NCBI RefSeq assembly: GCF_000150275.1
Contig: NW_002060974.1
Location: 341,744 to 405,743, forward strand
From: Trichoplax adhaerens
Taxonomy: Eukaryota > Animalia > Placozoa
Direction of reading: 5' to 3'
Length of the DNA: 64,000 nucleotides
In this document: positions 16,501 to 40,600 of the stretch, piece by piece
Layout of the letters: each line of letters opens with the position of its first letter
How positions within the stretch are numbered: the stretch's first letter is position 1
The notes under the pieces: generated by a model
Told to the model about the DNA's origin: nothing
What the model saw: only the letters and a program-made list of their open reading frames with translations
Databases searched by the model: none
Program-made: the position numbers and the translations under genes

Positions 16501-18007
16501 ACAGGGGAAGTTCAAGCTATTCAAGAAGAGCTTGAGAAGGTGCTTGAAAAGAAGCGATTATTAGAAGGTTTGCAAATTTATATATTTGATATCATCGAAT
16601 AACTATACTAATATTATCAAACCGATTGCCTTACTTTATTTGTAAAGATGTAGAACAGTCCAACCAAGAAGAAGAAAAGAGGGATAATATACCTGTCTTA
16701 AATTCTACTAACAGTTATTGTACAAGGCTATCAGGCCCATTGCCAACCGTTGAAACTGTATGTGGCAGGACCCCATCTCTTGCTACACAAGAATTTAACG
16801 GTATGATACATCAAGATAATTTTTCTGTTGTCAAAAGAATCTATAAATATGTTATTGCATATTTATAACACTGAAGTAAAATTAAATTGTCTTTATTTCT
16901 AGATAAAGGCGTTGAGGAAGATCTTTCATATGTTGATGATGATGAGATTAATGAGGTAAAATAAAAGTTGTACTAAAACATATTGGTCAAAACTTCCGAT
17001 ACACATTGTATTGTTAATTTAATATAATATTCTTATAAAATTCTTGTCATCAAAGTATTTGTTAGACGAAAAAGAAGTTGAAATTAAAACTAAAGTTTGG
17101 ACTGAAGAAAATAAAGATTACCTAACTGCGCAATTAGGTTTGAATGCTTGCATGGCTTTATCACCTTAGGTAGCATTATGAAACTTAACTATATTGCTAT
17201 TATTTGTGCTAACCTTTATAACGTAGAAAAAGCAAGTCGAATTGATAAAGATTCTAATGATAAACCTGAATCCAAAAAGGTAATTTTAAAATACTCATCA
17301 ATAACGTTAAGATGACTTATTGATTGCTCGTATTTGTAAATCAAGTTATGGAATCTAGTTTTTGACCTATTACTTATTATAAAATGTGAAAATTTTTGTC
17401 CTTCAGAGAAAGAGAAAATATAAAAGAAATCAACTTATTTCACCAGCAAATTCGGTTGGAGAAGCAATTGAGAAAATGCTCGCCGAGAAAAAGATATCTA
17501 GTAAAATCAATTATGAAGTATTGAGGGACTTAACGGAAACTAACGCTTGCACCACTAGCAGCGTGGAAAAGAATTCGAACTCGGCTAACACTTCGAAAGA
17601 TACAGTCAACCAGAGGTATAGTAAAAGAAATGAAATTGATTGTTGCCTGACATTGTTTTTCTTATTTTCTATTTGTTTGTCTTCAGATCTACCTCTACTC
17701 CCGCATCATCTAGTAAGAAAATTTTGAAGGTAAGATCGTACTTAATGAGATTGCTAATTGATGAAGATATTTCCTGTTAATCAATCGTGGAAATGATGAG
17801 TTTCCTGAGGAGGTCTTCTTACGCATTTATATCTAGACAATACCTGAAGAAGTTTTGTCGAGCGATGTCACTGTAGAAACTGGACCGATTGCCTATGAAA
17901 CTGGACCAATTGAATATGAAAGTGTACCTACAAATGATAATGAAGCAACATTAACAAATGAAATTCTATATGAGTCTAACTCTGATGATTCGGATTACAG
18001 TAGTTAA
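13538..18007 (+). CDS. BRF1: Transcription factor IIIB subunit BRF1 (TFIIB-related), 17 exons, about 586 aa
   Basis: Zn ribbon 'CPKCGG...[17 protein letters not shown]'; cyclin folds '[18 protein letters not shown]', '[10 protein letters not shown]', '[10 protein letters not shown]'; '[10 protein letters not shown]'; C-terminal 'KKISSKINY'. Exons: 13538-13718, 14248-14319, 14559-14732, 14943-14974, 15145-15217, 15468-15617, 15876-15969, 16155-16281, 16383-16413, 16505-16567, 16648-16800, 16903-16955, 17056-17137, 17227-17279, 17407-17615, 17687-17729, 17837-18007. Sum 1761 nt, frame-consistent. Confidence 0.96.
14733..14942 (+). other. U12-type (minor spliceosome) GT-AG intron in BRF1
   Basis: 5' splice site GTATCCTTT at 14733; branch site TCCTTAAC at 14913-14920; AG at 14941-14942. 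Splicing restores the conserved [15 protein letters not shown]. Confidence 0.9.
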
Positions 18008-21000
18008 CTAGCTGGTGTTTACGAATTTCGGGCAAGCTATTTTATTTAACGTTGGTATTGTTTATTCTTGCCACCATTTTTTATCGTTCATTCGTACCTG
18101 TGTAGACAGTAATTGCAGAAAATTGCCAAGTTGGCTTTACTGCTGCTAGTTATGGAATATAGCTGTATGAAGCCATCGACTTTTAAATATTAACGATGTT
18201 TATGGATGGGTATATCTGCCTTATAGAGTTATGGTCTACCTAACACCTTTTTCTTCGTTTGATGAGGCTTCTATTGATATCCTGGTGCATCCGAAATATC
18301 GATACACGGCTCGGTCTATTTTATATATATTTTGTCTTTATTACTACTAATTTTCATGAATGATTGTACAACGAAAATATTGCTCTTCCATAATGAAAAG
18401 AATGATAGTTAAAAAAGTTTAATTTTATTAGCCGATTATATTTGTAATGTATATTATTCATATTGCAAGTTATATAATGCATGTACATCGAGTACGATTT
18501 GTATGCAATTGTAACTTTTTTATATACTGATTCTCTTTAGTAATGATAAGAGATTTACCTGGGTCTATTTTTTTATTTTTGTACTATAGAGATATTGTAT
18601 ATATAACTATTATTAACAATTCAAAAGCAGCTTATATTGGAGATGTTTATTGGATATTAAACTTTAATGCCTATTTATTTCCTATTACTAAAATTATCAC
18701 TTATGAGCAGTGCTGAATACGCTCGGTATTGTCTCATTAGTGAATTCTGTATAGTATCATTGCACTAACATTCTCAAGTACTTAAAATCTATCTTGAATA
18801 TTACTGAATGTTCGATATCCTTTCTGATAATACCGATCATTGAGCGAAAGTATTGGTATTTATGTCAAATTTGCCCTTGAAGTTGTTATTGATATGATTA
18901 AACTGGAAAATAAAGATCTTTCATAGAGAAGCTAGTTAAGAACGGAATGTTCCTTCTAATGGTCATGTTATGTTTTCAGTTAAAGAATACAGTTGAAGTA
19001 AAGATGGGTCGAGAAAGTCCAATTAATATTATTTATAGTATTTGCTTATTATTATAAAATTATATATATATGTTTGAGTAAATACGCAAATTGTACTGTA
19101 CAAATCACACGCCAATAATATACAGCAATTAATTAAGCTGTAGCTTTATTCTACGTCAGGTTTGAAATAGCACTATAGCATTTCAACTGCAGTATATGTA
19201 AGCGTTTTATTGTAGCATACTTATGAAGGTAAAATTGCATTAAATTATATCCGATATTTTTTTATTTTCACATGATGCCTGTATCTAAATACAGGCCATG
19301 TCTTTCTTATCCATATAGACAACCAGGGTTTCTTATGGCAGATGGATTCATTCATACTTAGAAGGTATAGTAGTATACCGGCTTATTTACTGAACAGTAT
19401 ATCAATACGTATACGAGTAAACAAGTAATTTCTAGTTATTTTTAACGAATTGGCCACCAGCAGTGGATGTTTTCTGTCATGCAGGGCGTATATTTATATA
19501 ATTAATCATTCATCAATTCTCCGTTGTAGTACATACGTTAAAAATAGTTAATTTTTGATTCGTTGGTTATTACCTTCAAAAGATACAGTAAACATTAGCT
19601 AGATTCGGCTTAGAAACCACATTAAATGGGAATTAGTTGTCCATGATCCATTTTTGTCACTGTTTTCATTTTGATTTGATCAAATTTACTTATACTTTGT
19701 GAAATCAATAATGGCTTAGATTTGAGTTAATCGAATGAACATAGCCAGTAGTACAGTACTGTACAGTTTAATTGCTATACAATCGTACGTACGAGTTGTT
19801 ATGCCAGCATTGTAATTCGTATATGCATGCAATGATCAGTTAAGGCCTAAATCTTTACTAATTTCTTTATCGTTGGTAACATTACCCGTTGGAATCTATT
19901 TCGATGCATCGTATACGTACGCTGGAAAAGTTTGATAAATCCATTCAAGCCTTGCCATCTTGTATTTTAGGCTACTACTGTGTTACTATATTCTACTGAC
20001 ACCTTAAAACGAAACGCAATGCATTCCTAAATGTGCATGTTATTTTCAATGTTATAATGTAGATGGCATCAGCTATTTGCTTGCATAAGCGTATTTAGTT
20101 TGTTCGACAAATTTAGCTGATAGTGATCAATGTTTTCGCGTCCTGTGTAGATTTTATCCTTCGCTTATACTATACTCCTAACTGTACCGTAGGATAAAAT
20201 AACAAAATTCAATAATGACGATACCGCCCCACACTCCACTCTCGGCATCCCAGCGATGCCACCTGCAGTCGTGTGTACAACACTGTAAATAGTAAAGTGA
20301 GTCTGCTGTAAACTAGCAAGTATCACACTAAACTTTGTAATTCTGATAGGCAAGCTCTATTCAGACTGCATACCAATGATGCCATGACCAGATTGAACGA
20401 TATTAATTAGCTATCGCTGCTGTTGTTAATTAACTATCTGATCTATTAATCATTGCAAGATGATGAAAAAGGTCGGGATGCTGGAATGACAAGCAATTAT
20501 AGAGCTGGTTACTAATGGGCCTGATGGAATTCCGCTGAGGGTCCAATTTATAATCATTCATATGCCTTCCAGTATTGTGAAGATACTGCCTATTGTATTG
20601 ATTTAACTCATGGAAACCAATCTTGTCAAGACGCTAAATTAGTCCTGTTTTCACTCCTGTACCACGTTGGAAAACTTTACTCTACTTTTAATTTCGGAGC
20701 AGACTGGAAAATGCTATGCATACTTTTAAGTATGCATGTGTCCGCTATGTACTCTTGTACAGTGTCCATATTCAACTGTACTATACGTGTATAGTTGACA
20801 ACGACGGAATGACTACTGTATTATATACTCCGTGGATAGTGGATAGTGGATACGATAACGATGTCAGTGCCTCATTTTCACATGCTGATAATTCAGAATT
20901 TTATCAAGGGAGTGACACAGAGAGATCTGCATGTTAATGACTGCCTACTAGCAGAGCAAGTGGAGTCATTTGTACTCATTTTCTACCAAAAATCTACTGT

Positions 21001-21466
21001 AGCAGGATTCTTGAATGGGATGAATGGAAGGCTATTAAGTTAACCATGACGCAACTTTTCATCTTGTCGATCAATGAATCTTATTGTTTACTAAATTGAT
21101 TAGCATCAGGATTTAATCCAAAGGAGGTGATAACATAATGAATGATCATCAATTAGAGCGTAATTAAAAATGTCGCTTTGATTTAAAAGTGCAGACTACT
21201 TTAGTGATGAATACAAGATGTTCATCATGGTAAAATACCATGCAGCAAAGGACATGATGATCATGAACGATGGCCATCCAAGGAATCATCGTGTTAACGA
21301 AGCAACCATGACTATTTGGGACCGTATCGGCTCACTTACTTGACAACGTTGTATTACTATATACTGCGCCATGGACTACCAACGAAGTAGTAGTCCATGA
21401 CTGGACTTGAACATTATTCGACGAGACTCCCATTACTTGCCATAGTCATAGGGTGCTCCGTGGGGA

Positions 21467-21542
21467 AACCGGTTCCGCCGGATTTGTTATTACTTATTAT
21501 GATTGCCTTTTAACCGGTTATTACCGGTTATTGACGTCCAAT
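21467..21542. promoter_or_regulatory. Candidate enhancer or promoter: clustered Grainyhead/CP2-type AACCGGTT sites plus CRE-like and CCAAT motifs
   Basis: AACCGGTT at 21467 and 21512, TACCGGTT at 21522, TGACGTC at 21532, CCAAT at 21538. Confidence 0.4.
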
Positions 21543-23929
21543 CCACTATTTCGTAGTAACCGTGGCACGCTCCAATACAGTACAGTACACACGCATTACC
21601 GACATAGCGTACAGTACTGTAGGCTCCAGTAGATTCTCTTCTGGTCTACAGTACTAATACTGTATGACCGACTAGGATAGTACCAGTACTGTAACAGTAT
21701 CGACGAATAATTGCTGCAGTATTTGTAAACATGGTGAATTATTTTGGGACACGAAAAGTAAACATGGTAGTAGAAGGACACAAATGGATGGATGACGATT
21801 TGGACAAGAGGGAAAAGATAAATCAATTAATCCAATGGCTTGAGATGATGGCAGAGTGATAAATGGTATGACAGATCAGCATCAAAATCATAGACAAGCA
21901 TCCAAAGTTGTATCCTCCACACCCTAGTGATGATAACACAGAACAATCAATCATGTTCTAATTGCCATTAATCTCATCGATTGTCGCGAAGAGGCAGGAA
22001 AGCGCTATGATTCCCATTCAAATACAGCATTCTACTGGATTGCATTGAAATGATAATGAATTCATTCAAGCATCCGTACCCCGCAAGCTATTTCGCGTTG
22101 CTATTAAATGCTAAGCCAATCCAATAGTTATTGTTGTTTTGATCAATCCGTTAGTTTTGCAGTATTGTCAAGGCGTTTAATCCATACTGTAGTAGAGTCC
22201 AGTATGTATAGGCATTTATTGGGCAATCGTCAATCCATTTTATTGCTATGAATAATGTTGAATAATTGTATCCCATTCATTTATTCTGCAATTATAAAGG
22301 ATAAAGTGGTGTCGAAACGGGCGATGTTTATTATGTTAATGAAAGGGCTGATGGCAATCTAGCGCCTACAACTGTACTCTACACTAATAGCAGTAATATG
22401 TTACGGTTATGCACTACTTGCTGTAGTGGTGTGGTCTAGTTTAATGAATTGTTCAAGTCCGTCCCCAGATCATGCTAGTCTATCTAGCCTTGGCAATTGT
22501 TCAAAACTCAGCGGTAGTGAAAATTAATCCAGTCCTCCTACCTTACCCATAACAGCATAACAGTGTTAATTCAATCATGACAATATTCAAAAGTCATGCA
22601 AGGCCTCCCAAAAGATGGACAAGCCAAAAATGTTAGGGTTACATAGGCATAGTGTGTCTTTCTCAGGCACAAGATCGCTTAATTTAAAATACATCCATGA
22701 TCATGACTTGGGATTTTGAATACTGTATCTAAAGTAGAGTTCAAAGGGCGGCTGAATGGAGTCCATGCTACCTTTGTGGGTACATACAACCGGTACACAT
22801 GATACAGAGCAGTTTAATGTAAATATGGGATAGGCTAGAAGCCACTAAAACATGAATTGCTTGACTATACTGAACAGTCTAGAGCCGTCTACGTTCAGGA
22901 ATGGATAGCGGTTTGCGCGCTGTCCAAGAATAGATTGCATCATCATTCATTTTCCTCTCGAGTAGCACCGTACTGTTGTAAACTACCTCGAGAGAGATAG
23001 AGCTTTGTATCATTTACAAAGACTCCTATCCATACTAGAGTAACACGCATGAGTCTATCCATGACTAAACATTTTTCCATTTGTTGACAGTGACAGTCGT
23101 TGCAAGTGAGAAAGAAGTATTGATTTTCGGCCTATACCGCTATATATCCATTAATTTTTAGCCGTAGAAATCAAACGGTCCAATTCAATGTTCATCATGG
23201 ACCATTGGCCACTGTAACGACAAGATTTTCAACTTGTCTTTGTTACTACACCAACGTCCAATGTTGACGCTTGCAAAACGTCAGCATGAGTGACAAGGTG
23301 GCATGAACCTGTGTGTGGTGTTTATTTATTAATTTACGCATATTTATTTTTAATACGTGTTGTGTCCAGCCTTAGTGTTGCTCTGTATTACGCCGTCAAT
23401 TGTGCAAAATAAGACCTGAATAAGCAATCAAGGATGTCCAAGTTGATTTGTAATCCATCCTTGCTTTAGTCATTGATCGCCTATCATTATGATCGAGTAA
23501 TTCATGTTCGTTTCCAGCAAGTTTTGTAGTATTGTCCATTGAATTCACCAGTTCGACACATTGCTCTTGCTACCCATCCAAGCAAGTACAATAGTCGACT
23601 GCTTAGAGGAAAAGCATGTGTATTCCACTGACTGTTTATAGTCCAATCATGTCGATGCTTGTGTATTTTCCACATCGACTACTACGTAAAGTAAACTAAT
23701 CCACTCCATCGTTCATCGTTGATGCGCTTGGAATGAACGCTACAGTATGGCAAGCCGTCATGATTGATTTCGTCAGCATGAGACACTCCTTCCATCCTTT
23801 CAGCCGGCGTACAGTACCCGCCAACATTGTACAGTACGCCTTGATGGATAGTACGGTACAGCATTGCGCCAAATGGAATGCACCAGTCAATGTACAATTT
23901 GGGGGCATTGTTGATCGGCAGGCATCTAG

Positions 23930-24621
23930 CCAATAAGATTGTAGCTCAAGGTGGCTCTCGCCAGCTCTGATTGGTCTCTCATCGCCCTATTGTACGGCAG
24001 ATGGTCGCTTGTGGTGAGTACACACTTCACTTTACCGCTACCGCTTGACCATTATTAGAAAGGAAAAACGAATCCATACAACAACAAACGTCGCTGGCTC
24101 CTGGCACGAGGTAATGGAATTTTCTTCGCCACTGTAAATCTTTGAATTTCAAGCCATTTTTTTCCTTCTTCTTATAGCGTGGATAAAGTCTTACTTCATT
24201 CTATATACAGTCATGATGAATAAGTGTTTAATGGTTATTTTATGTTGGTAGTGAGAGAGAGCAAAGGGTTGTTTTTTTATTGCAGATTGCTTATGTTGAT
24301 ACGCTACAGTAACTAAATCATCCTCGCCATTTTGAGTCCTCTTATTGTCTTTGACTGTACTGTATTTTTTTTCACTGTCGCTACTATTAGATTCACACGG
24401 TGTTTTGGGCGCGGAATTGTTTTTGTGGATTGTTATCACGGGTTTTTGTAAGTCCTTTGCATAGAATAGTGCTTTAAAAGCCAACTGGATACAGACCATG
24501 ACAGGGTAGAGTAGAAAGTAGATGAATTGACGTTATCCTTTTTTTTCCCCCTTGCTATTGGTATTATAGGAGAAGGATCTTCTTTCTTTCAACTGCCCTT
24601 TTAACTCAACGTTGATTGTAG
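23930..24621 (+). promoter_or_regulatory. Putative promoter, non-coding first exon and 5'UTR intron (24111-24621) of the SLC3 gene
   Basis: GC-richer patch with CCAAT (23930) and ATTGG (23970); donor GAG|GTAATG at 24110/24111; acceptor TTGTAG ending 24621, about 107 nt before the ATG. Confidence 0.4.
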
Positions 24622-24662
24622 ACAAGTGAGTCAAGACCGGAAAAGTGTAAACTCCTTTTTTC

Positions 24663-24677
24663 GTGTGTGTGTGTGTG
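24663..24677 (+). repeat. (GT)7 microsatellite in the SLC3 5'UTR region
   Basis: gtgtgtgtgtgtgtg. Confidence 0.85.
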
Positions 24678-24727
24678 CTGTCTAAGACTGCGACTAACGT
24701 ACAAGAGGAAAAGAAAAAAAATCCAAA

Positions 24728-26509
24728 ATGGGAACTGAAGAAGATCACAGAAATGGCGAATCCAATAACGTTGACAACCCAAGTGAAAAGGAAAAGATTG
24801 ATTTTTATACGCCTGGGTTAGTTTTAACACGTAAAATTTTCTTATGGGCGTACGCATTGGGTACTATTGGTGTCTTGATTGCCGCCTTTGCCTTAATTGC
24901 TACCATGCCTAAACGATGCCCTAAAGAACGTACTTGGTATCAACAAAATGTCATGTACAAAGTTTATGTACCATCGTATAAAGATAGTGATGGCGACGGA
25001 ATTGGCGACTTAAATGGCATTTTATCCAAGTTAGACTACATTGCTAGTTTAAATGTCAAAACACTCTGGTTAAGTTCATTGTATGAGGCACCGACTACTG
25101 GGATCAAACCCAACGGCATGGAATCGAATTTTACCGCTGTTGATTCTAAATTAGGCACAACTGCCGATTTATCTGCTTTAATTCGCGCTGTCCACAAGAA
25201 AAAAATGAAAATTATGCTCGACTTTTTACCTACCGCTACCAGCAACAACAACAGTTGGTTTATTGAAAGTCGAAGCTCTCTTGATAATGCCAAAAGTAAC
25301 TGGTATGTTTGGGAAAATCCATACAATGGTGGCCCACCACGAGTCAATTGGAGTTCAACAGAGAATAACAATATCCATTGGCAATATGATAATCTCCGCC
25401 AACAATATTACATGTACTATGATATCAAGGAACGACCAGAGTTAAATTTCAAGAGTAGTTCGTTGCGTGCTGAAATCAAAAGGATTTTCAGTTATTATCT
25501 TAAATTAGGTATTGATGCTTTCAATATCCATGGTATGGAATGGCATTTCGGTAGTGGTTCAACTGTCAACGGCAATGTCAGACCATCATTTAGTGTCTTA
25601 TCTGAATGGAATACTCAAGTTGCTGGCTATACTGACACCAAGTATACCTTCTTGGTTGGTCAAGTGCCCAACGATATCAATGCTATAACCGTTAGCCAAT
25701 CGTGTAAATTCAATGCTCTCTACTTGTTAACCTATAGTCTACTACCCAACAATGGCCCATTAACTGGTACTGGTATTGCCAATGTTGTCTCCAATTGGAT
25801 TGCTACTGTTAGCATGTCTTCACCCAATCGTTATCCACATTGGATGTTGCGTAACCAAGCTAAAACCCGAGTTGCTGCAAGTTTCGGTCGCCAATATATT
25901 GATGCTTTGAACTTTATTATGATGACTTTACCCGGTGTGCCCAGCAGTTATTACGGCGAAGAAATTGGTATGATTGATAGCACTGTTTCTTATGCACAAA
26001 CTCGTGACCCATTAGCTCTACTCTACGGCCCTACCAACTATGCCACTGTATCACAAGATAAAACAAGAGGACCAATGGCATGGAATTCAACCACCAATGC
26101 CGACTTTACTAATGGTACATCAACGTGGTTACCACTTGCAAGTGATTACTCAACTGTTAATGTCGCTAGTCAAGTTGGCTCGGTCGATTCTAACCTAGAA
26201 CGTTATAAAAATATCACAGCCTTTCGAGCTAGCGAAGATTTACTCAAAACGGGCAACTACAGTCGTGTTATGGCCACCAATGAAGTTTTCGCTTTCTTCC
26301 GTTACTCCAGTAGTAAAAGCTACGTTGTCATGACTGTTGCCAATGTTGGTGCAACTTCACAAAATGTTGACATCAAACAGTATTATGGTACATCTGCTAC
26401 AACCGCTACTGTCAAAGCGGCTACTAGGTCTAGTGTTCATGGCACTACCGTTCAATTGAACAACATACAGCTAGCCAGTGGTGAAGCCGTAGTAGTACAA
26501 ATTGGTTAG
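24728..26509 (+). CDS. SLC3A1: SLC3 heavy chain of heteromeric amino-acid transporters (rBAT/SLC3A1-like), 593 aa, single coding exon
   Basis: Short acidic N-terminus, one TM helix, juxtamembrane 'PKRC' cysteine then 'WYQ'; GH13 fold 'YKVYVPSYKDSDGDGIGDLNGILSKLDYI', 'TLPGVPSSYYGEEIG', 'SQDKTRGPMAW'. Catalytic positions are degenerate (DAFNIHG, VGQV, NQA). The B-domain-length segment is retained, as in rBAT. Confidence 0.85.
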   Translation: MGTEEDHRNGESNNVDNPSEKEKIDFYTPGLVLTRKIFLWAYALGTIGVLIAAFALIATMPKRCPKERTWYQQNVMYKVYVPSYKDSDGDGIGDLNGILSKLDYIASLNVKTLWLSSLYEAPTTGIKPNGMESNFTAVDSKLGTTADLSALIRAVHKKKMKIMLDFLPTATSNNNSWFIESRSSLDNAKSNWYVWENPYNGGPPRVNWSSTENNNIHWQYDNLRQQYYMYYDIKERPELNFKSSSLRAEIKRIFSYYLKLGIDAFNIHGMEWHFGSGSTVNGNVRPSFSVLSEWNTQVAGYTDTKYTFLVGQVPNDINAITVSQSCKFNALYLLTYSLLPNNGPLTGTGIANVVSNWIATVSMSSPNRYPHWMLRNQAKTRVAASFGRQYIDALNFIMMTLPGVPSSYYGEEIGMIDSTVSYAQTRDPLALLYGPTNYATVSQDKTRGPMAWNSTTNADFTNGTSTWLPLASDYSTVNVASQVGSVDSNLERYKNITAFRASEDLLKTGNYSRVMATNEVFAFFRYSSSKSYVVMTVANVGATSQNVDIKQYYGTSATTATVKAATRSSVHGTTVQLNNIQLASGEAVVVQIG

Positions 26510-29500
26510 TAAGTTGGGGTAGAAGTATTGCAACGTATCGCACGGATACAATATTACGAAATCATAGCTGTCATCGGATCACTGGACAACATGAGTTATA
26601 TGACCCAAAAAAATTAAGTAGTATAGTGAATGTCCTTTCATTGTTCTAGTTCTATCTATTTAATAAGTTATATGTAGTAATGTCTTGTGCATAGTAGATA
26701 GATTAAAATCTTATTCTGAATAAAAAAATATTTGTAGTTAATCACTGTTATTAGTAAAGGGTTAGCTTTTAACGTTTTGATTCATAAATCATTTCTATGG
26801 AATCGCCACTGCCATATAGGAATGACCCACACTGAGTGGATTTAGATAGTTGGAGTTAACACCTTGAGAAAGATAAATCAATGCAGTTGTAAATAACAGC
26901 TATGAGCAGCTGTAAATCATATTGATAGTATTATGATAACGGTAATAAGTCTTTCAATTGAGTACATCTCAGGAAGTTGGTACTGTCTCCTGTTGTATAG
27001 CAAAACAATTGTCATGTGGATAGTGCTTGGAAGTAATATTGAAATGCTTTATTTACTATTAAAATTGTAAGATGGTGTTGTTGTATTCTGGTTGATGCAA
27101 TTACCTTGTTACCATTAATCCATCTTATACCATTTGAATGATAGCTTCTCGATGTGTTAACTTTAGTATTGCAAACACTTTATTTTCTCTTGTTACTGCT
27201 TAACTCTTAAAATTTAGCAATTATTACCAGCTATTTATAATCACAATGGTTGTTATTTAACGGATTTTAGTATTAATTTGCTTATTGTTTTGTAATGTAT
27301 GCGATTTCTCGCCAGTCAATAGATATATGATTTTCAATCTCATTCCTGCTAGAAAGTTGAATGAAAGCAGTGATGTTACTAAATAATATTATGCAGAAAT
27401 TTTGCATTCTGGCTGAGCTGCGCACCCAAATATTAATATCTTATATTGTACGTTGCCATAATATGTACTTAGTCTAATCTACGTACAATTTTAATTCATT
27501 TGGCAAGATAATAATATTATTGAAATTTTTACTTAACTGACGAGTACTGTACGCCTAGATATTTTAAAATACAGGTTTCGATTGTTATAGTATTTAGTGC
27601 ATTAAAGACTATTCTCGATCGATGTAAGGCTGATGGTAGTTTCAATATGGAGTGAATTAGTTTGTTCTTCAAGCATTTCTGTTTGAATTTTATAGTGAGC
27701 ATCACAGTATTATAGATTAGAGAGGATAGGACCTACGGTACCATTTTATTTGCACTTGCGGTATAGCATAAGGAAATTTTGTTGATACTTCAATTGAACG
27801 TCTTTCTTGGAGATAAGGACAAAAGTTGATAATGGATTTTCATGCAGTGGTAGTATATATGAAAAAATTATACGTGCTACAACTAGATATAGGTAAATTC
27901 TTCAGGGGAATAATTCGTAAGATTTCATCCGGCAGTGAGCACGGTGGACGGTATAGTAATACAGTAATCTTAGGACAGAAGATCCCGTTCTATTCCCAGG
28001 CCAAGCTGTATCCATTGCTATTTATTTTTATTTTTTAATCAATAAATCCATTTCCTTTAGTTTACTCACGATCATCATCAATTTACTGTACATGGCTTGA
28101 TCGATTCTTATCTCAACGCAAATATACTACTGTACTATGTTATCTTATATCGATAAATTCATTTCCTTCTGATAATTAATCGATTACCATCATTTCTAAC
28201 GACCGCCATTATAATTATCAGTTGTTGGGGGTATCCTTTTCAATCTAATTAACGTTTACAATCTGACAAAATAGAAGAAGGGGTAAGCACTATTAGAGTC
28301 TAATAAGACGAAATTTAATCTTTTCATTGTTGTTATAGGATGGAAAACGACTTTGTTATAGGGAACAGTTACACTAACAATAGAACAGCATATGTCGCAT
28401 GCAAAAAAATCAATCTGTTAGATAAGTAATCTTTGAACTCTGGTTTCTACATTCTTAACACATAGATGATATCACGGATATCCACTATGACAATCGGATT
28501 CGATATATTCCTGATGATGGCAATAAAATGATGCTACCATAGATTGTAATTGCCTCGTCAATATCATAATATTAGTACAGTTGTTTATTACATAACATCG
28601 AGGAAATAGATTATCCCATAATCTATTCATCAAAAAGTAATGCTTCGTCCAAGAAATGACGGCTTGTTGGTACAAGAGTAGTTAATGGCAGCTGGCGAAT
28701 TCTGTCACGTAATTTGGACAGTCAATATCCTGGTTTTTGAATATACTCCTACTTGATAATTCTAATTCCTAGCATAAATATAGCTTGGATTCATTGTATC
28801 ATGAATAATAAATTTTCTAGTAGTTGTTCTACCAACAAATAGAAGAAATTCATAGTTGGTACTGCTTATGTAATCAAGGGCCATTCAATCGACCTCACGT
28901 GATGCTGAATTTAGTTTACCGCAGAGTAAATAAAGCCCAGCGTAATTGCTTCGTCATCATACTATAGTGCTAAGGTAAAGATATGCTCGGATGAGAATAA
29001 CGTGAAAGTAGTCGATTTATTTATAGAAGAATTAATTTAACTATGAATAGCAGCAGCCTGGCGTTATAAAATCTATAAAAGAAGTAACAGCTCTTCAAGA
29101 CGAACAATCAATTCTTGATTCATCCATTCAATATTGTGATACTCAGATACGCAATAATTTCAATGAACGATGCATAGCGTTCGGTACGTTGTGCTATAAC
29201 TGTGCCACAACCAAGTAATTTCTAGATTACTTATATAGACAGAGATATGATAGTTATCTTCTCTTTTTAAAGATAATGACATCGTAGTGTTACCAAACTT
29301 AATTAATACAGCGTATAGAATAGCAAGTATAAATAGAATGTTCACAGAAGTTCAAGGTAGAATCATAATGTTGTTAATAATAAAAGTAGATACCTAGCCG
29401 GATTACAGGATCATTTTAAATGTACTGGTGAAGTATCATTGATTACATTTGAAATAGCATAACGAAAATTCTGAATTTTGAACGCATTTTAATTCCACTA

Positions 29501-29806
29501 ATGAATTATATGGCCGAAGATACGTAAGAGATTGATTATTTGACATATTGCTACAGTAAAGATTCTCTGAATACCTCATTCACTTACTTGATTTGTCCAT
29601 GAGACACTTCAATAGCCTAAAAATATCTAAGCAACTGGGTAGTATCGGCACAAAGAGAAATATTACTAATCATGCAGAACTCTTTATACTATAAGATTAA
29701 TGTCATTGTTTGACAGAAACAGATTCGTCTTTTATTGCGGCTGTAATTTATCAATTCTGTATAGATAGAATATGTATTAAAATGGTAATAGGATCTCTCG
29801 TTGATT

Positions 29807-32800
29807 CTAGTTAAAAGTGTTCAAGAGTTCGTCAGGCAGATCTAGGGCTTTATGGAGGAATGCAATCTCAAAAGCAGCCTGCAGTATAAAGCAAATTTAT
29901 TATGTTACCAACTGATACAATATTCAGTGAAGCAACGGAGCTATTAATAAATTCGTACGCTTTCATGAAGCAAAGCATCAATAAAGCTAATAAAGTTGAC
30001 TATTATAGAAGCAGTGTGTAAATATAGTCCAGAAAAATAATTGAATCTAGTCAATCAATTACGGAACATTAAATAGTATCTTTGTGTCCGCTAACCCCTA
30101 GGTTACCAATATCGTTCGTTTAACATAACTACAGCCGTTCCCAATTGGAATTGCATCTACGACTAGTATTACATAGATACTACTGTAGTTGGTAGAAGTT
30201 TCACAAATTCAGGCACATTAGGCATTACCTCTTTTAATCCTTCATCGCCAGCTGTACCATAATGACCGGATGACAGATTAGTTTTTAAGATGTGATAAAT
30301 TTTATTATTCGTTGTGGCACCTTCATGTTGTGATTGATAGTCTCGTTGAGCTGCTCTCAATTTTGCCATAAAGCGAACTGGAGACCAATAAGGTACTCGA
30401 TTGTCATTATAAGATGCAGTTAATAGCAAAGAAGGATAAAGCTAATAGTTGGCACAAAAAAATAAGACCAATACAAAAAAGTAACATGCATTCAGCAACA
30501 ACAATTGCATACGTGTATTTAAATAACAAAATTAAACTATGTAGCAGAAACCTACATTGCGCTGAATATTGGTGTAAGGGCAGTAAGAACAAATATAGTC
30601 AAATACATGGCTGGAATTTAAATCACCCCATTCTTCATACTCTTCGACAGTCAATGGCAAGGACTGATCAAGCATCGTTCCCAAGATATCTACATGTGGT
30701 ACCTAAAATGACAAGATCATAAATAGACGATAAACCTTGTATTTAATTTCCAGTATGGTACATACTACAGGCCAATGCAATCGGCTACTCTAAGCTTACC
30801 TTCATAATTGCTGCAGCTATTTTATTCGGGTGATTGTTACAAAGATGAGCAACAATCAAACCTCCGGCACTAGTACCTTTGCAAGATGTCAATGTTGGCT
30901 TAGTGTAGCCTTGATCTTGTACCTCATTAATGCAAGCTAAGAAGTCATAGAATGAATTCATTTTATTAAGTTGACGACCTTGATAATACCAATGCCTTCC
31001 AAATTCACCACCACCCCTGTAAAATTAAAATGAAACATGTAATTGCTGCATTTAATTTAATGGTAAAATATAGCAATTACAAAATAGAGTTATGCACATC
31101 TTCGGTTCAGTTTTTGGTAGTATTTATCAACTGTATCCTTGGTAATGTCGATTAATGCCTTACTGTACATATAAAGTTTAATCACCTGACATGACAGAAG
31201 GCAAGAACCCATCCAGCTTTCAACAAACACATATTTTGAACTGAAAACTGTCGGTTTAATTCCATTCCATAAGCACCATAAACTATGGCTAGCAAAGGAG
31301 TGCTGCTATTCAGAACGATATCTTTGCGATGACATAACGATATTGGTATTTTACATCCATCCTGTAAATGATTTTGTAGTAATTAACTTTGAAATTCACA
31401 CTTAAAATAATAATATCAAATAATAGACCTATATCATTTCACGTAGCATCGTAATATCTAGGTTAGTGTTACTTTGTCTAACCTTGCTAGTGGCATGTGA
31501 AATATAGAATGAGTATTGATCACTATCCAAGCCAATCGTTGATGGCGTCAAGTTGTTTAATGCCATAGTTCTCATATCCAACTCATAAAATGTATCAGCA
31601 ATTAGAGGGGACGAATATGAAAACCTTACAGTATCTGCGGAGAAAGTAAAGTTAGAAGCAGAGGCGATGGTACCAATAGGAAGTTTAAAGGTTTGGCATT
31701 GGAGTGGTGAATGTAGGTTAACTATTGTTATCTGCGGTTCTAAGTTTTCTCTTTGGTAGAGAACACAATAATCTGCAAAGATATCCATATCATCTAAGAG
31801 AGTGTCAGTACTATCACTAGCAGAGTCCTTATCCATAGCTTGCAGTTCTTTCCAATTATCACGACCAGGATTTTGATCAGGTGCCATCATAACCTGTCCA
31901 AAAAGTATTACAAGCTTTCATTATGTACACCACACTCGTATCAAGATTCTGTGCCAATACATGACTGAGAATTAGTATAGCGATAATTTGATTCTAAATA
32001 GTCTTGGTTGATACACATTCTATAACGTTATTAACTAGCATTTATTAGCGTAAAGCAGCTTGAATAGATTCAAAGTTTCATCATCCAAAACATACGATAA
32101 GCTGCTCAAGTGCTCATCCATTCCTGGCTGAAGAATAATAATTATATAATTTATGTCTAACGCAAAAGCTGTTTACTTAAAATGTAGCCGTGTGTAGATT
32201 AAATATTCAATATAATCAATTACTATCAAAATCTGTTCTGTAAAGTTGCAATTCATTGGGCAATGACACACTGTAACTGATTCTTAATAAGCCATTAAAA
32301 GCATGACATGGAAAATGGCGTCGGTATGCAAAAGATAGTCGCACGCATTTTCATTTACCTTATATTTTCCTGAAGATTTGTCATTAGTTAATATATAAAA
32401 ATGATTGTTGCTATGATCGACATAACATTCACAGTCAAGTTCCCTTTCTTTAATAAGAACCGGTTTAGATTTCAATTTTTCTGTATCTAAAGCCCAAACC
32501 TGTTAGGGTAACAAATACATAGAAACTAGTCACGAAATGCTGATAATTAAAGCAGAAAAATTGAATACGTACGTACCTCAGATGATGATTTTGAATTCAA
32601 GTTAATAGTAAGAAAGCGATGATTCTTTGTACATACAATATGTAGGAAATACTTTTCGTCATCTTCTTGGAAGAGTAGTCGATCCGTTAGTCTAGAATCG
32701 AACGCTCTTAACCATACTTGGTAGGGTCGACGTCTATAATTTTGTTTAGTATAGATAATACTATCTTCATTCGATGCAAATTCAACAGCGAACGCATCCC

Positions 32801-33892
32801 TGATTACGTCTATCACATTCGGTTGATTTCCACTTAGATCTATTATATGTGCTTCATAATTTTCTTTTCCGTTAGTGTCAAAAGTGTAAGCAACTAGCTA
32901 GGTAAAATATTAGAAATAAGAAAGCAATTGCATTCTCATTAATATATACTACATGCGATTCATACAATCCATCAGTTCATTAACACGCAAATCTTAAACA
33001 CCTCTAGGAGCAACTACGAGGTACAGTACAAGAAAAACTAAACAGCAGCTAATGACTTTACCATAATATTTTTACGCTATAAAACTGATGATATGTGCAA
33101 CACATACCCGGTGAGATGGAGAAACTTTCAGCTGACCGACACAACAATGTTGATGTCTTTTCGACAAATCATTTAGATCTAAAATGACTTCTTCATTATT
33201 ATCGACAAGATTGCTATCCAGCTTACGGCGACAATAAATAGGTAAAGATGCAGCGCTCTCTTCTTTCATATAATACTCATATTTTTCCAATATCTTTATA
33301 AAAGAAATATACGATAATCTTTAACATATAATATGTAATGATAAGTCGATGAACTTAGTTATCTGCATTCTAATTATAGGCATACTGGAGATATTGTAAT
33401 AAAATCGAATTGATTAGGACAATCATGGCAGAGGCTGACGGAAGCGTTTTCGCATTTATTATACTATTTGCAACCATTTGTTTTTAAATAGCTTACAAAT
33501 ACTGTAGGTACGAAGATTACCTCAGGAGGAACAGTTAGCTGAGCTTCTATGTCACTCATTGTTCGTACTAGCTTAGATTGGATTGATTTTGTATTTGTCA
33601 TGACCTTCTTAGCATATGAATTTTCTTGCTGAAGATATTTCATGACTGCTGCATTACCTTGATCTTTCAACCAGTGATAGGGATCTGAAATTGTTTTGCC
33701 ATGCACACTAATAGTCCAAGGTTTGATAGCTGCTTTCGGAGTTGAAATATAATCTTTACGGTTGAAAGGCCAATTAAATTTTAATCTTCTTGACAGTAAT
33801 TGGTACGGCAATGAGAACTTGTTGTGTATATTGCCTATCCATTCGCTTGATATAAGCTTGGACATAGATCCTTTCAATATGACCGTCGCCAT
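29807..33892 (-). CDS. PREPL: Prolyl endopeptidase-like / oligopeptidase B-like S9A serine peptidase, 10 exons, about 751 aa
   Basis: 'VHGKTISDPYHWLKD', 'VYGAYG', 'HVRGGGEFGRHW', nucleophile 'GTSAGG', 'LPLTVEEYEEWG', 'NDNRVP', 'GHYG'. Exons: 33892-33521, 33293-33108, 32897-32577, 32499-32359, 31893-31483, 31361-31186, 31016-30800, 30702-30556, 30441-30229, 29878-29807. Sum 2256 nt, in frame. Confidence 0.88.
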
Positions 33893-35969: not shown

Positions 35970-37669
35970 TTAAACTTCGTTTTCTTCAAAAAACTCAGCA
36001 TCTATACCTAATTTGGTATGGCAATCATAAAACTATTTTCAGAAATAGTTTATCAGATAGAAATCTATCTTTTGTCTTATAGTATGCAATTTTAACAAAG
36101 CCTGATTGAGATGTATCATATGCTCATACCGTGAGTATCACCTAAAATAACAGGATTGACATCGTCAATAGAGTGCCCTCTCGGAAAATTATCTGGCCTA
36201 GAAGTAGTAAGAGAGCCAATAGTGATTGGAAGCCGCATTATCAAATTCTTCGCTTTTGGAACAAGCACAGTAACCTATATTGAACGAAATTAAGAACAGT
36301 TTCAGTTTAAAACATCAACTATGACAGCACAAGTACCGTATATCCCATATTTCTCCAAAATTGAAAATAATTAAAATAAATCAGAACCTGAACACTGTAC
36401 TCCGCTTTAATAATGCGTCTGTAACTGATTGCTGGTGGTATATGCGGAATGTCGAACGATTCATCATTTAAGTTAAAAGTCTTTCCTCGATCGACTGGCT
36501 GATCAGATTCAAGTGCCACAATAGTATCGTAATATTTATAAAAATTGCCTATATGCATTGCCAAGTTTATAAAATGAATTAGTAAAATCCTTCAAAAACT
36601 ATTACTTACAGTTTATCAACCCATTGAGATCGAGACTACCTTCTACACTAGCTAAAACTCGACGAACTAGTGCCACTTGAATCCCTTTTAGAACTACATT
36701 ACTTGAATTCTCACACTCAATATTTAATAACATTGTTTCGCCAGGAAGGTAACCAGAACGATCTGCTTTTATACTTAGTTTAACGGTTCCAAATTGGCAT
36801 AAAAAACGATTTAAAGGCTGTTCGAGGCGCAATTGTGATGGCTGTTCCTATATTAGGATAAAATAAGACAATCACCCTTGTTAAATACTATCTATCTCAA
36901 AATTGTCAAAAATTTCTAGCTTTTTATAATTTAAACTGTCAATATACTGTGAAATAATTTGGCTTCAGCCAGTCCCTATTCTCGTGAAATAGTTTACTGT
37001 TTTAACTCAGTTATTCCTAGTGCACCATAAATCATAAAGAGGGGATTATACTTACTCGTAATAAGGGGCGAGGTACATCCACTGTTTGAATATATGTAAA
37101 TCCTGTTTCACAAGTGTAATTCTTAGATGGAGGCCTCTCAAATTGAGCAACAATTCCATAAAATATGATACAGTAAGGTCTACTATCAAACGATGACGGC
37201 ATGTCATCATCGGTATTTAATTGATTTGTAAACTTAAATTCATGATAGCCAGCAGGCAATGAATGTCTGCTATCAAACACTTGATCAGATGCTATAATAT
37301 ATAGAGGGATAAGAATCAACGCAGATACACAGTTAGAAAGTTTCCATCAAAATTATTACTAGGGTTTATCTGTTATAGATAGTAAGTGCATAATTCATGG
37401 TATCCATACAGATTCGGCATGTTTTTAACAATAATTTCCTTACCATCACCCCAAATAGTTTGCTTTTCATCAAGGAAGTAGTGATCGACATTACAACCAT
37501 GTTTACTTCTAGAAGCAGCCGAAGCCCGTCCACGAAGGCGAATACTCAAACCCAATGCTGGCATTGCAACTTGTATTTGGATTTTGATGGTGCCATTTAT
37601 AATATCGCCTTTATAATAATTAGCTTTAGGATTTTCTAGCTGGATTTCGAAAAGAGTCAATTTTCCCAT
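35970..37669 (-). CDS. Alpha-arrestin (arrestin domain-containing, ARRDC/TXNIP-like), 6 exons, about 335 aa
   Basis: 'YYKGDIINGTI', 'LPAGYHEFKF', 'MPSSF', 'GYLPGE', 'IENSS'-like 'CENSS', 'RLPITIGS'. Exons: 37669-37444, 37291-37056, 36847-36640 (alternative in-frame donor at 36610), 36548-36388, 36274-36130, 36001-35970. Confidence 0.88.
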
Positions 37670-40600
37670 GTTAATTACTTCTATCTTCTAAGCTGGAACC
37701 AATAGGGTAAAAAGAAAGGATTGATTAGAGCTTTAAACTTTTGAAATCTCAGTTTAGGAAACACGTTCTAGTTCAATGGAAATACGAATAGTTTTTCAAA
37801 TGGAGAGTACAGCAGCAGTTAGTAAAATTAAAGATAGCATTAGTAAATAATTTCATCTCGTAACTTGTCGTTGTCTTAATCTGATGTTAGAAAAGCAGAT
37901 TTAAAAAATACAAATGGCTAATTAAAATTTATTATCTTACTATAGTGTTAATATTAGTACGGCAATAATTTTAGCTTAAGCCAATTATATTCGATCTGAT
38001 TGTGGTTTGTCACGCCTAATTAGTATATTGTATAATGTCTATTTACCCATTCTGTAAACATAGCGAAAGTCTTGTTAAAGCATACGTTACATGTGTTGAG
38101 TAATGCACTTGGTTATGTATTCTCCTTCTTTTTGTAGCATGAGCACCAGAAAAACGTACACTGATGCCCAGAAGTATCTAATCAATGGATGCTGAAACAA
38201 CATAAGCAGTATATTTACCAAGAAATATCCCCAAAAAACTTTACCAGGAACTGTAAAAGACAAGGGTTCATTTTAAGTAATGAGTAAAACAAAAATCGGT
38301 CACAAGGTGTATACTGATAGCTTCTGCTAGACATGAAGTGAATATTATTTGGCAATCCTTTAACCTGAAGTGTCTTATTTGCTTAGTATGGTATCAAATC
38401 GCTTTAAAAATTTATGGTACATGTGTATATATACAGCTCATTATAGCTAAGTAAATGCACATAGAAATCAAACTAGCTTGAATTTTATACTACGAGCTAC
38501 CCTAGCATATCATTTAAAAGCTATTTTAAATGTATTACTTAATACAGTACATTAAATTTGCTTAATTCGATGAACTGTATTTAGCAGCTTTCGGAAGACG
38601 ATATAAGCTTAAAAAGTGGATATCTATTGTAGTCGATTCGAATGTATAAGATAATTGCCATATTAGATTGACGACGCTATAATTTATTTCAATTGCAGCT
38701 TCATCATCACCAGCTGAATCATTACTGATCACAAAGCAAGGCAGAAAATCTAAAAACTAACCTGCTCTAATAACTGTATATGCTTATTCCAGCGTTATAT
38801 CTTATGATAGTGTTATAAGAAGATTACCTAATCAGCTTGCTGTTAAAGTTTTAATCGTGCAATATGAAATTATACAAATCTTGACTGGCATATCCTATAT
38901 TAATTAATAATGAATTAGTTTAGATAATTTGAGACGTTGGATCCATCATGATGTCATTGCTACTTTTTTCTCTAATTGCTCACCAGTACAAAAACATAAT
39001 GAATTTAAGGATACGTAGGAATAGGGTGTATATCATCATCTATTTGTTATGCTTATCTTCTAAGCTTAGAATATTTTATATCATATTCAGCTCAAGACAG
39101 ATCTTTCTGCTATCTTCTAATTCAGTAAAAGTGATTTAAGTTTTTCGATTTCTCGTTAGCTGTCAACGATTTGATCGTGACATAATTGTTGAATCATCAG
39201 ACAATATGTTAATAAAAGAACTGAATTAAATTCAAAATTGCTCCTCCCTAGGTTCTTCCTGAAAGGTCTTCAGGTTCTTTTATATGAAACATTACTTTAC
39301 ATTGTAATATCATAAAAGCTACTTTAGGACTAGTGTTACAGTCATCAACTAATCTATGTGCCAGAATAGATATAATAAATAATTCATTAATAATTGATGT
39401 GAGCATGTTAAAATGTCAATCGGTTTTTATAAATTGATGCTCATGTATGAACAATCAAACTGGATTATTAATTCTCTTGTTCGTTGCTATTTTACGTCTG
39501 CTTTAATGCGAGTTCTCGTAGACCTCTAGTAGAGCTAACATCTTGATAGCGCAGTAACATTTAGTAATCTTAAAATGAAATCATCGAAACTGAGTAGAAT
39601 TCAATTAAGTTGTGGTAATATAAACTTTCATATGAGGCAAAAGAAATAGTCGTTAAATAGATAAATCTGCTATATTTCTTCAAATTTAATTGCTGCTACT
39701 ATTTTTGAATTGATGTTGTAGAGACGCGCATATCAGTGTCAAAATGTTAATAAAAAGAAAACAAGACTCGTAAATTAGCGAAGTAACAGCCATTATTTTG
39801 TTTAAATCAGTAATATGTCAGTACAGCGTAGTATATAAGCTTTGCAGGCACATTTGATATACTTTGTATATGCAAACTTAATTTTTTTATCATTATAGGT
39901 ACACTATGATAGTAAATTAATTAATGATCGTAGTTCAAGGGTTCAAAATCTCCTTAAATTACAAAAAGAAGTTACTAACACATGTACTTCGAAAGAGTCG
40001 AAATCATCATATCCCTATAAGCTGTAAGGTTATATCTTGACAGCAAGACATTTTATACGTCAAGACCTTGACACATTAACAATGTGTTTTTAAAAAAATG
40101 TGAGGCAATAACGATCAATGCGTTAGCGTCGATATCTAAAAGCTTCGCTAAATGGCAACAGCTGCATATAATGTCTTTAGAAAAGAGTTATCCTCAACTG
40201 TTTCATACAACAACTAATCTCAAAACCTAAAATCCACTCGATAATTTTTTCTGGCTACAGTAACTCTACAGTTAGTTGATATTACATACTTATAATTGAT
40301 GAAGTAAATGATTTACTGGACTGTTTTTTATCATCCTTCTAAAATTCTTATTTTAGTTAGGGTTTATACTTTATCAATCGTTCGATATAACTATGCTGTG
40401 CATAAATCGAGCCATAGATACATTCCAAAAATATTGTCAAGAATGCGTGAAAACTTCCAATATTAATTGTCAACATACGTATAATTCAAGAGCAAAAGAT
40501 GTTTTACCTGGTGTCAGGAGGGTGGTTTCTATTAAATTTTATGCCAAATACGATTTTCGTTTTAAGAAAATAAAACTGTTTTCAAGCATTTCTTAGCTTT

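Follow-up and report, generated by a model that had tools for sequence, protein, structure and literature searches.

At human 2p21, PPM1B, SLC3A1, PREPL and C2ORF34/CAMKMT are found in one cluster (PMC2713978), and hypotonia-cystinuria syndrome involves the joint deletion of SLC3A1 and PREPL (PMC2713978, PMC6465885). PREPL and C2ORF34 form a head-to-head pair in mammals and chicken (PMC2713978), and this is the only one of the relevant pairs contained in Davila Lopez 2010. The pairs reported by Irimia et al. 2012 (PMC3514665) include ancient microsyntenic neighbours that are unrelated to each other, have preserved their orientation and are present across several phyla. Here, we analysed a stretch of 64,000 nucleotides from the placozoan Trichoplax adhaerens (NCBI RefSeq assembly GCF_000150275.1, contig NW_002060974.1, positions 341,744 to 405,743; hereafter the window), in which a GH13 gene resembling rBAT, the SLC3A1 product, and a PREPL gene are convergent direct neighbours. 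Trichoplax is known for having retained ancient gene order.

The initial annotation of the window had proposed that this pair is conserved from an early-branching animal to humans and that its conservation implies a constraint. The arrangement itself was recovered in full, and the pair was absent from the intermediate lineages sampled (0/9 loci, with 10 kb flanks), so that the proposed constraint was not supported. The reading that we favour, although we place it a little short of an even chance, is that the shared arrangement has passively survived from an old gene order, without being maintained by selection. This order would have been broken in most lineages and would have survived passively in placozoans and vertebrates, with the GH13 and PREPL genes not being functionally coupled.

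The tail-to-tail gene pair

The genome searched was the 105.6-Mb assembly comprising 1,414 contigs, in which the window corresponds to C1383:341744-405743. Coordinates refer to the window unless another contig or locus is named. The gene pair and the elements of the region between the genes are located as follows:

24728..26509 (stop included), + strand: GH13 gene, rBAT-like heavy-chain candidate, a single intronless open reading frame (ORF) of 593 codons
24836..24919, + strand: membrane helix I37-M60 and neck cysteine C64 (PKRC) of the GH13 protein, aligned to rBAT in phmmer
26510..29806, no strand: intergenic spacer between both stop codons, 3,297 bp
26719..26724, + strand: candidate poly(A) signal AATAAA, the first past the GH13 stop, 210 nt downstream of it
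29731..29736, - strand: candidate poly(A) signal AATAAA, the first past the PREPL stop, 71 nt downstream of it
33892 (ATG) to 29809-29807 (stop), - strand: S9 serine-hydrolase (PREPL) gene, 10 exons, 759 codons

The two genes are convergent and directly adjacent, with a stop-to-stop distance of 3,297 bp once exon 10 of the PREPL gene is included, in agreement with the tail-to-tail arrangement and the 3.3 kb described initially. No gene had been evident between them, and a Pfam scan of the spacer ORFs likewise yielded nothing significant (the sole match up to E 0.1 was a sub-threshold one to DUF4014, E 0.016), while a scan of the spacer against Rfam returned zero matches. These scans thus found no hidden gene or RNA inside the spacer, and a repeat origin was rejected because the spacer is single-copy sequence in the Trichoplax genome. 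Both predicted poly(A) hexamers were present. The window is AT-rich, with a GC content of 28-40%, and contains AATAAA 230 times, so that the two sites are weak evidence for polyadenylation. The pair consists of two unrelated genes that converge in the window and would each be transcribed separately.

Identity of the PREPL gene

All searches and tree placements of the PREPL gene were performed exon by exon, with no joined spliced model. The scripts used for the gene model computed exon-length sums and translated short junction peptides for the choice of splice sites. The resulting model has the following exons, all on the - strand:

33497..33892: exon 1, from the ATG; PF02897, E 2.3e-11; donor ambiguous (33497-33521)
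33108..33293: exon 2, propeller; PF02897, E 2.6e-10
32577..32897: exon 3, propeller; PF02897 and tblastn
32359..32499: exon 4, propeller; tblastn and splice borders
31483..31893: exon 5, end of the beta-propeller; PF02897 322-408 and tblastn
31186..31361: exon 6, DGCKIPISL, start of the catalytic domain; tblastn with 40-50% identity to animal orthologues; GT-AG
30800..31016: exon 7, catalytic Ser codon 30871-30869 in GTSAGG, then HLCNNHP; PF00326
30556..30702: exon 8, LPLTVEEYEEWGD ... SYCPYTN; PF00326 and alignment
30229..30441: exon 9, catalytic Asp codon 30405-30403 (NDNRV) and His codon 30264-30262 (SGHYG); alignment
29807..29878 (coding 29878-29810): exon 10 plus stop, AAFEIAFLHKALDLPDELLNTFN and the stop codon; acceptor CAG, phase 0

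The 10 exons have GT-AG borders throughout and add up to 2277 nt, or 759 codons, within the range of the animal orthologues (731-791 residues). Matches obtained by tblastn with eight animal orthologues were collinear from 33826 to 30229. Exon 10, which reads AAFEIAFLHKALDLP..., corresponds to the C-terminal helix of animal orthologues (compare Porites ...KEYAFLHKALGLP). It lies outside a long ORF that ends at 30172 and from which this helix is missing. At the other end, the N-terminus of oligopeptidase B (OpdB) aligns from PREPL residue 49, leaving approximately 48 residues ahead of the first aligned one (33749-33892, - strand). This N-terminal segment is basic with few acidic residues, and it could serve as a mitochondrial presequence like that of the long isoform of human PREPL.

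Exon by exon, PF02897 (Peptidase_S9_N) and PF00326 (Peptidase_S9) were matched in the order expected for an N-terminal propeller followed by a C-terminal alpha/beta-hydrolase domain. Among solved structures, exon 7 matched Trypanosoma brucei OpdB (58.0 bits), human PREPL (57.9), prolyl endopeptidase (47.8) and bacterial OpdB (39), and exons 1 and 9 matched OpdB weakly. The sole structural match of exon 5, to viral p81, was rejected as spurious. In a representative search of 1.84 billion proteins with exon 7 as the query, the best nameable full-length matches were animal proteins labelled 'prolyl endopeptidase-like' or 'protease 2-like', with amphioxus, the sponge Corticium, Ptychodera, Patiria, Amphiura, Porites and the newt Lissotriton as their sources; some of the top matches lacked protein names or were non-animal. 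When amphioxus PREPL was used in a word-index search, OpdB and PREP proteins of amoebae, plants, algae and bacteria were retrieved, but no vertebrate or placozoan protein.

In a FastTree phylogeny of 100 sequences, an animal clade that includes newt PREPL was recovered with a support of 98, nested among eukaryotic OpdB-like proteins. Exons 2, 3, 5 and 6 were placed inside this clade and exon 7 as its sister (0.96), so that five of the nine exons placed fell in or beside it; the remaining four, which are the shortest or least conserved, landed elsewhere without support. Two exons had the protein P0383 as their nearest full-length relative. The Trichoplax gene also carries signatures of the animal clade, namely 'CN' past the serine motif and an insertion past KLR. 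Only one other S9A gene was found in the Trichoplax genome, on C1408, and this gene fits the PREP-type profile far better. On these grounds, we identify the - strand gene as the placozoan orthologue of animal PREPL, and its original designation as PREPL-like was thereby supported by phylogeny.

The Ser-Asp-His triad of the Trichoplax protein is intact (GTSAGG, NDNRV and SGHYG). Seven residues past the catalytic Asp, it has Ser (YWS), whereas most bacterial OpdB rows have Glu (YWE); a Glu at this position was absent from every animal row aligned. In OpdB, this glutamate reads the P1 arginine; human PREPL has Gly in its place (PMC8634043). Around the catalytic serine, Trichoplax has GTSAGG and the named invertebrate orthologues have GxSAGG, and among the sequences sampled newt alone has AxSxG (AASAGG), a motif that has been linked to the esterase activity of vertebrate PREPL (PMC8634043). 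The AxSxG form thus looks like a vertebrate innovation, and the orthology of the Trichoplax gene appears compatible with its GxSxG motif. Taken together, the propeller and alpha/beta-hydrolase domains, the triad and the loss of the P1-arginine glutamate are shared with PREPL within the S9A family, of which OpdB has the same fold and triad, whereas the GxSxG motif is retained where vertebrate PREPL has AxSxG. The Trichoplax protein would be an OpdB-derived serine hydrolase with an intact triad and a peptidase-type GxSxG motif, lacking the OpdB glutamate for P1 arginine, and its chemistry may be closer to that of a peptidase.

Identity of the GH13 gene

The predicted GH13 protein matches PF00128 (Alpha-amylase) over the full profile (positions 2-446 of 446, E 1.2e-73). 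Its top matches among solved structures were sheep and human rBAT (258-267 bits, phmmer against the PDB), followed by an insect sucrose hydrolase (225 bits), with bacterial glucosidases also ranking behind rBAT. No 4F2hc chain was found among the 60 matches listed of 93 at E<=1e-20. A region equivalent to domain B is present and aligned with that of rBAT; domain B is missing from SLC3A2/4F2hc. The ORF shares 98% identity with Trichoplax adhaerens TRIADDRAFT_51166, a public model of 502 residues that covers 85% of the 593-residue ORF and is hence shorter than it.

A hydrophobic segment of 24 residues (I37-M60) matches the membrane helix of rBAT, within which the alignment to rBAT begins, and is the single N-terminal membrane helix of the protein, in type-II topology. 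Four residues past it, C64 in the motif MPKRC is aligned with the cysteine in the rBAT motif SPKC that forms the disulfide bond to the light chain. Local alignments of residues 31-66, scored against shuffled sequences, gave z values of 2.9-4.5 to vertebrate rBAT, 2.5-3.2 to hemichordate SLC3A1-like proteins and 6.7 to the eukaryotic protein P0182. Values of 0.7-0.8 were obtained for two GH13 paralogues of Trichoplax on C1414, indicating that their helix is unrelated. PF16028 (SLC3A2_N) was matched weakly, below the cut-off (E 0.021).

All three catalytic motifs of the GH13 family are replaced in the window protein (DAFNIH for GFRxD, GQV for GEA and NQA for NHD), whereas the catalytic positions are retained in fish rBAT and in both C1414 paralogues. 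Judged from these motifs, the window protein is predicted to be catalytically dead. Because an rBAT-type membrane helix and neck cysteine are combined with catalytic loss, it is probably the heavy chain of an amino-acid transporter. As such, it would be linked by a disulfide bond to an SLC7 light chain, which it would carry to the membrane.

The LAT-type SLC7 light-chain genes of Trichoplax keep the partner cysteine in the respective loop. An exon at C1411:3656361-3656747 (L033) scored 132 bits to b0,+AT in an alignment that pairs ffpgCspp with ffptCepp. Since these light chains keep the cysteine, a disulfide-linked heavy chain is expected in Trichoplax, a role for which the window gene is the best candidate. 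xCT, b0,+AT and LAT1 were the best matches of L033, in which the cysteine for the bond with the heavy chain is conserved. A second match to the amino-acid permease family, at C1411:3667419-3667805, neighbours L033. Two other amino-acid permease loci were considered as light chains and rejected as CAT-type.

Compared with rBAT/SLC3A1, the Trichoplax protein has the same type-II topology, membrane helix, position of the neck cysteine and GH13 domains A, B and C. It differs in showing only about 32% identity, in having replaced all three catalytic positions, in a deletion of about 20 residues past region II and in ending without the vertebrate C-terminal tail. The earlier description of the gene as rBAT-like is therefore apt with regard to architecture (best PDB match, helix, neck cysteine and domain B), whereas orthology to SLC3A1 was not established by the tree and the approximately unbiased (AU) tests reported below. 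No paper was found that joins rBAT, 4F2hc and Trichoplax.

A similar neck was seen in a well-supported clade of eukaryotic GH13 proteins (P0127-P0182, for example L025 10001-11989; ENA, Logan assemblies), which combine a cytoplasmic tail and a membrane helix with an rBAT-like 'SPxC' neck; the P0182 gene (L025) is intronless. Members of this clade may be heavy chains of invertebrates or protists.

Gene order across animals

For vertebrates, the comparison was based on one fish locus (Dallia pectoralis, L012) and on published statements. The order in fish is a PP2C gene, SLC3A1 (+), PREPL (-) at a distance of 425 bp and a Methyltransf_16 gene, in line with the convergent SLC3A1-PREPL pair reported for vertebrates. 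Trichoplax and fish thus have in common a GH13-type heavy chain and PREPL as direct tail-to-tail neighbours, but the gap of 425 bp in fish contrasts with 3,297 bp in Trichoplax, and the Trichoplax heavy-chain gene is intronless and its product apparently catalytically dead, in contrast to fish rBAT with its retained GH13 catalytic motifs. The flanks differ as well: the vertebrate neighbours PPM1B and CAMKMT are unlinked to the pair in Trichoplax, where a BRF1 and an arrestin-domain gene are found instead:

17383-17724, + strand: BRF1 (exon for the Brf1 TBP-binding domain), upstream of the GH13 gene
36322-37687, - strand: arrestin-domain gene (Arrestin_N and Arrestin_C exons), upstream of PREPL

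On scaffold C1383, zero matches were obtained for PF10294 (CAMKMT type) and PF00481 (PP2C); such genes are located on other Trichoplax scaffolds.

Besides fish, the survey included 10 kb on each side of six PREPL-anchored and three heavy-chain-anchored loci (two sponge or sponge-like, coral, sea star, three hemichordates, amphioxus and a further eukaryote), and the GH13-PREPL pair was found at none of these nine. No GH13 gene was present in the 10-kb flanks of PREPL in amphioxus (FERM gene and kinase upstream, dynein heavy chain downstream), the homoscleromorph sponge Corticium (Ras-like gene downstream), a second, sponge-like contig, the coral Porites (downstream side without a called gene), the sea star Patiria (FERM gene upstream, downstream side empty) or the acorn worm Ptychodera (FERM gene upstream, Rpb7-like gene downstream). 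Conversely, no S9 gene was found within 10 kb of the tandem SLC3A1-like genes of Glandiceps and Saccoglossus, which are followed by lipocalins, or of the heavy-chain-like gene of the further eukaryote, which has a bZIP gene downstream. Searches of the DNA of the surveyed loci with tblastn detected both families together only at the fish locus. The sequence of a second placozoan (L024, 6.4 kb) stops before any PREPL exon could appear.

Because its 3' neighbour differs in every invertebrate sampled, the 3' junction of PREPL must have been broken often, whatever the ancestral state. A heavy-chain-like GH13 gene is the sole family met twice as 3' neighbour among the PREPL loci, and it was convergent both times. 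The absence at nine loci is still compatible with passive retention. With the pairs described in Irimia et al. 2012, the Trichoplax pair has in common that its members are unrelated neighbours found in the same orientation in distant animals, but GH13-PREPL occurs in two lineages only and is missing from nine loci in between. In the literature collection searched, no paper was found on the combination of PREPL, SLC3A1 and synteny or on the conservation of the pair, and the supplements of a 2022 synteny paper name neither gene.

An ancient pair could instead have been kept by selection, through shared regulation, an interplay of the 3' ends or a functional link between the genes. The same partner families do occur in the same convergent orientation in two lineages that have been separate since early animal evolution, and both genes are co-deleted in human hypotonia-cystinuria syndrome, which shows their proximity and not a functional link. 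However, a constrained pair should be present in most genomes that rearrange slowly, and this one is missing in amphioxus, acorn worms, sea star, coral and sponges. The spacer measures 3.3 kb in Trichoplax as against 425 bp in fish, with no recognisable common element, and we found no report that the SLC3A1-PREPL pair is conserved. Constraint is disfavoured because the pair is absent from intermediate lineages, an absence that had been named beforehand as refuting it; given the nine loci without the pair in their 10-kb flanks and a spacer of 3.3 kb that is single-copy and featureless, we regard selection on the pair as unlikely.

A more serious rival to passive retention is that the placozoan and vertebrate adjacencies arose separately and that the Trichoplax partner is a fast-evolving GH13 paralogue rather than the SLC3A1 orthologue. 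We consider this a substantial possibility, although again one below an even chance. It takes account of the absence of the pair from all nine other loci, verified at the DNA level, of the vertebrate flanks PPM1B and CAMKMT lying on other Trichoplax scaffolds, and of the FERM gene upstream of PREPL in three invertebrate deuterostomes, which implies that the vertebrate neighbourhood is derived at least on that side. In addition, Trichoplax has three membrane-anchored GH13 genes, the window gene and a tandem pair on another scaffold:

C1414:13176098-13195212 (L015 1375-3156 and L016 1261-3171): GH13 tandem pair, intronless, membrane-anchored, catalytic motifs intact

The members of this pair, which are named 'Maltase A3' in Trichoplax sp. 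H2 (one is 100% identical to a protein of that strain), share 46-49% identity with fish rBAT, a sea-star maltase and Chloroflexi alpha-glucosidases.

Several observations on these paralogues weigh against passive retention and at the same time favour separate origins. Fish rBAT is closer to the two C1414 paralogues (478 and 453 bits) than to the window gene (275 bits). In the tree, a very long branch (2.3-2.7 substitutions per site) leads to the window gene and to a relative with 84% identity from a different placozoan; it falls within a poorly resolved animal clade of rBAT, hemichordate SLC3A1-like proteins and maltases. AU tests rejected none of the groupings of the window gene with rBAT (p 0.11), with rBAT and the hemichordate proteins (p 0.18) or of all placozoan GH13 proteins (p 0.054). 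If the window gene were a placozoan-specific duplicate, the adjacency could not be ancestral. The view is, moreover, limited to flanks of 10 kb, and certain lineages may lack an rBAT orthologue altogether. With three paralogues and every adjacent pair inspected, a few chance matches per genome are expected by our own estimate. We regard coincidence as almost as likely as a passive relic.

On the other side, separate origins have to contend with a prior of about 1e-4, again our own estimate, for one named gene to acquire a convergent neighbour from a three-member family. Among the three Trichoplax paralogues, only the window gene has the rBAT-type helix and neck; in the C1414 proteins, the nearest cysteine lies approximately 25 residues past the helix. 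Furthermore, a clade of the window gene with rBAT was not rejected (the AU p of 0.11 given above), and the retention of ancient gene order in Trichoplax is established knowledge.

The FERM genes mentioned above (FERM_N/M/C only, 750-850 residues) are located directly upstream of PREPL and on the same strand:

L018 1-4441: FERM gene, amphioxus
L021 1-4843: FERM gene, sea star
L022 1-2544: FERM gene, acorn worm

Trichoplax has a FERM gene with an extended low-complexity tail at C1414:13199105-13202495 (- strand; L026 3906-7296), which converges on a catalytic GH13 paralogue about 3.9 kb away and whose FERM exon is nearest to the FERM domain of PTPN21. These arrangements may point to an old FERM-PREPL-GH13 block. 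The fuller version of this proposal, which appears unlikely to us, is a pre-bilaterian relic block in which FERM is followed by PREPL, PREPL converges on the GH13 heavy chain and the convergent 3' ends are under shared constraint; its surviving pieces would be FERM-PREPL (amphioxus, sea star and acorn worm), GH13-PREPL (placozoans and vertebrates) and the convergent GH13-FERM (Trichoplax C1414). Another FERM match was found on the scaffold of the window (C1383:93260), 280 kb away. Within the window, the region 20000-24700 has a GC content of 39-40%, compared with about 30% nearby, and its longest ORFs are without a Pfam match.

If the linkage of the two genes is ancestral, as passive retention would have it, the human contiguous-gene-deletion locus at 2p21 would trace back to the base of animals, and the catalogue of ancient microsynteny would gain one further pair; by itself, such linkage would give no pointer to a functional tie of PREPL with cystine transport. 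Clear PREPL orthologues exist in placozoans, sponges, corals and invertebrate deuterostomes and keep the peptidase-type GxSxG motif, with the esterase-type AxSxG in its place in the one vertebrate examined (newt). With an apparently dead, rBAT-necked GH13 protein and light chains that keep their cysteine, Trichoplax would provide a simple system for studying the origin of heteromeric amino-acid transporters.

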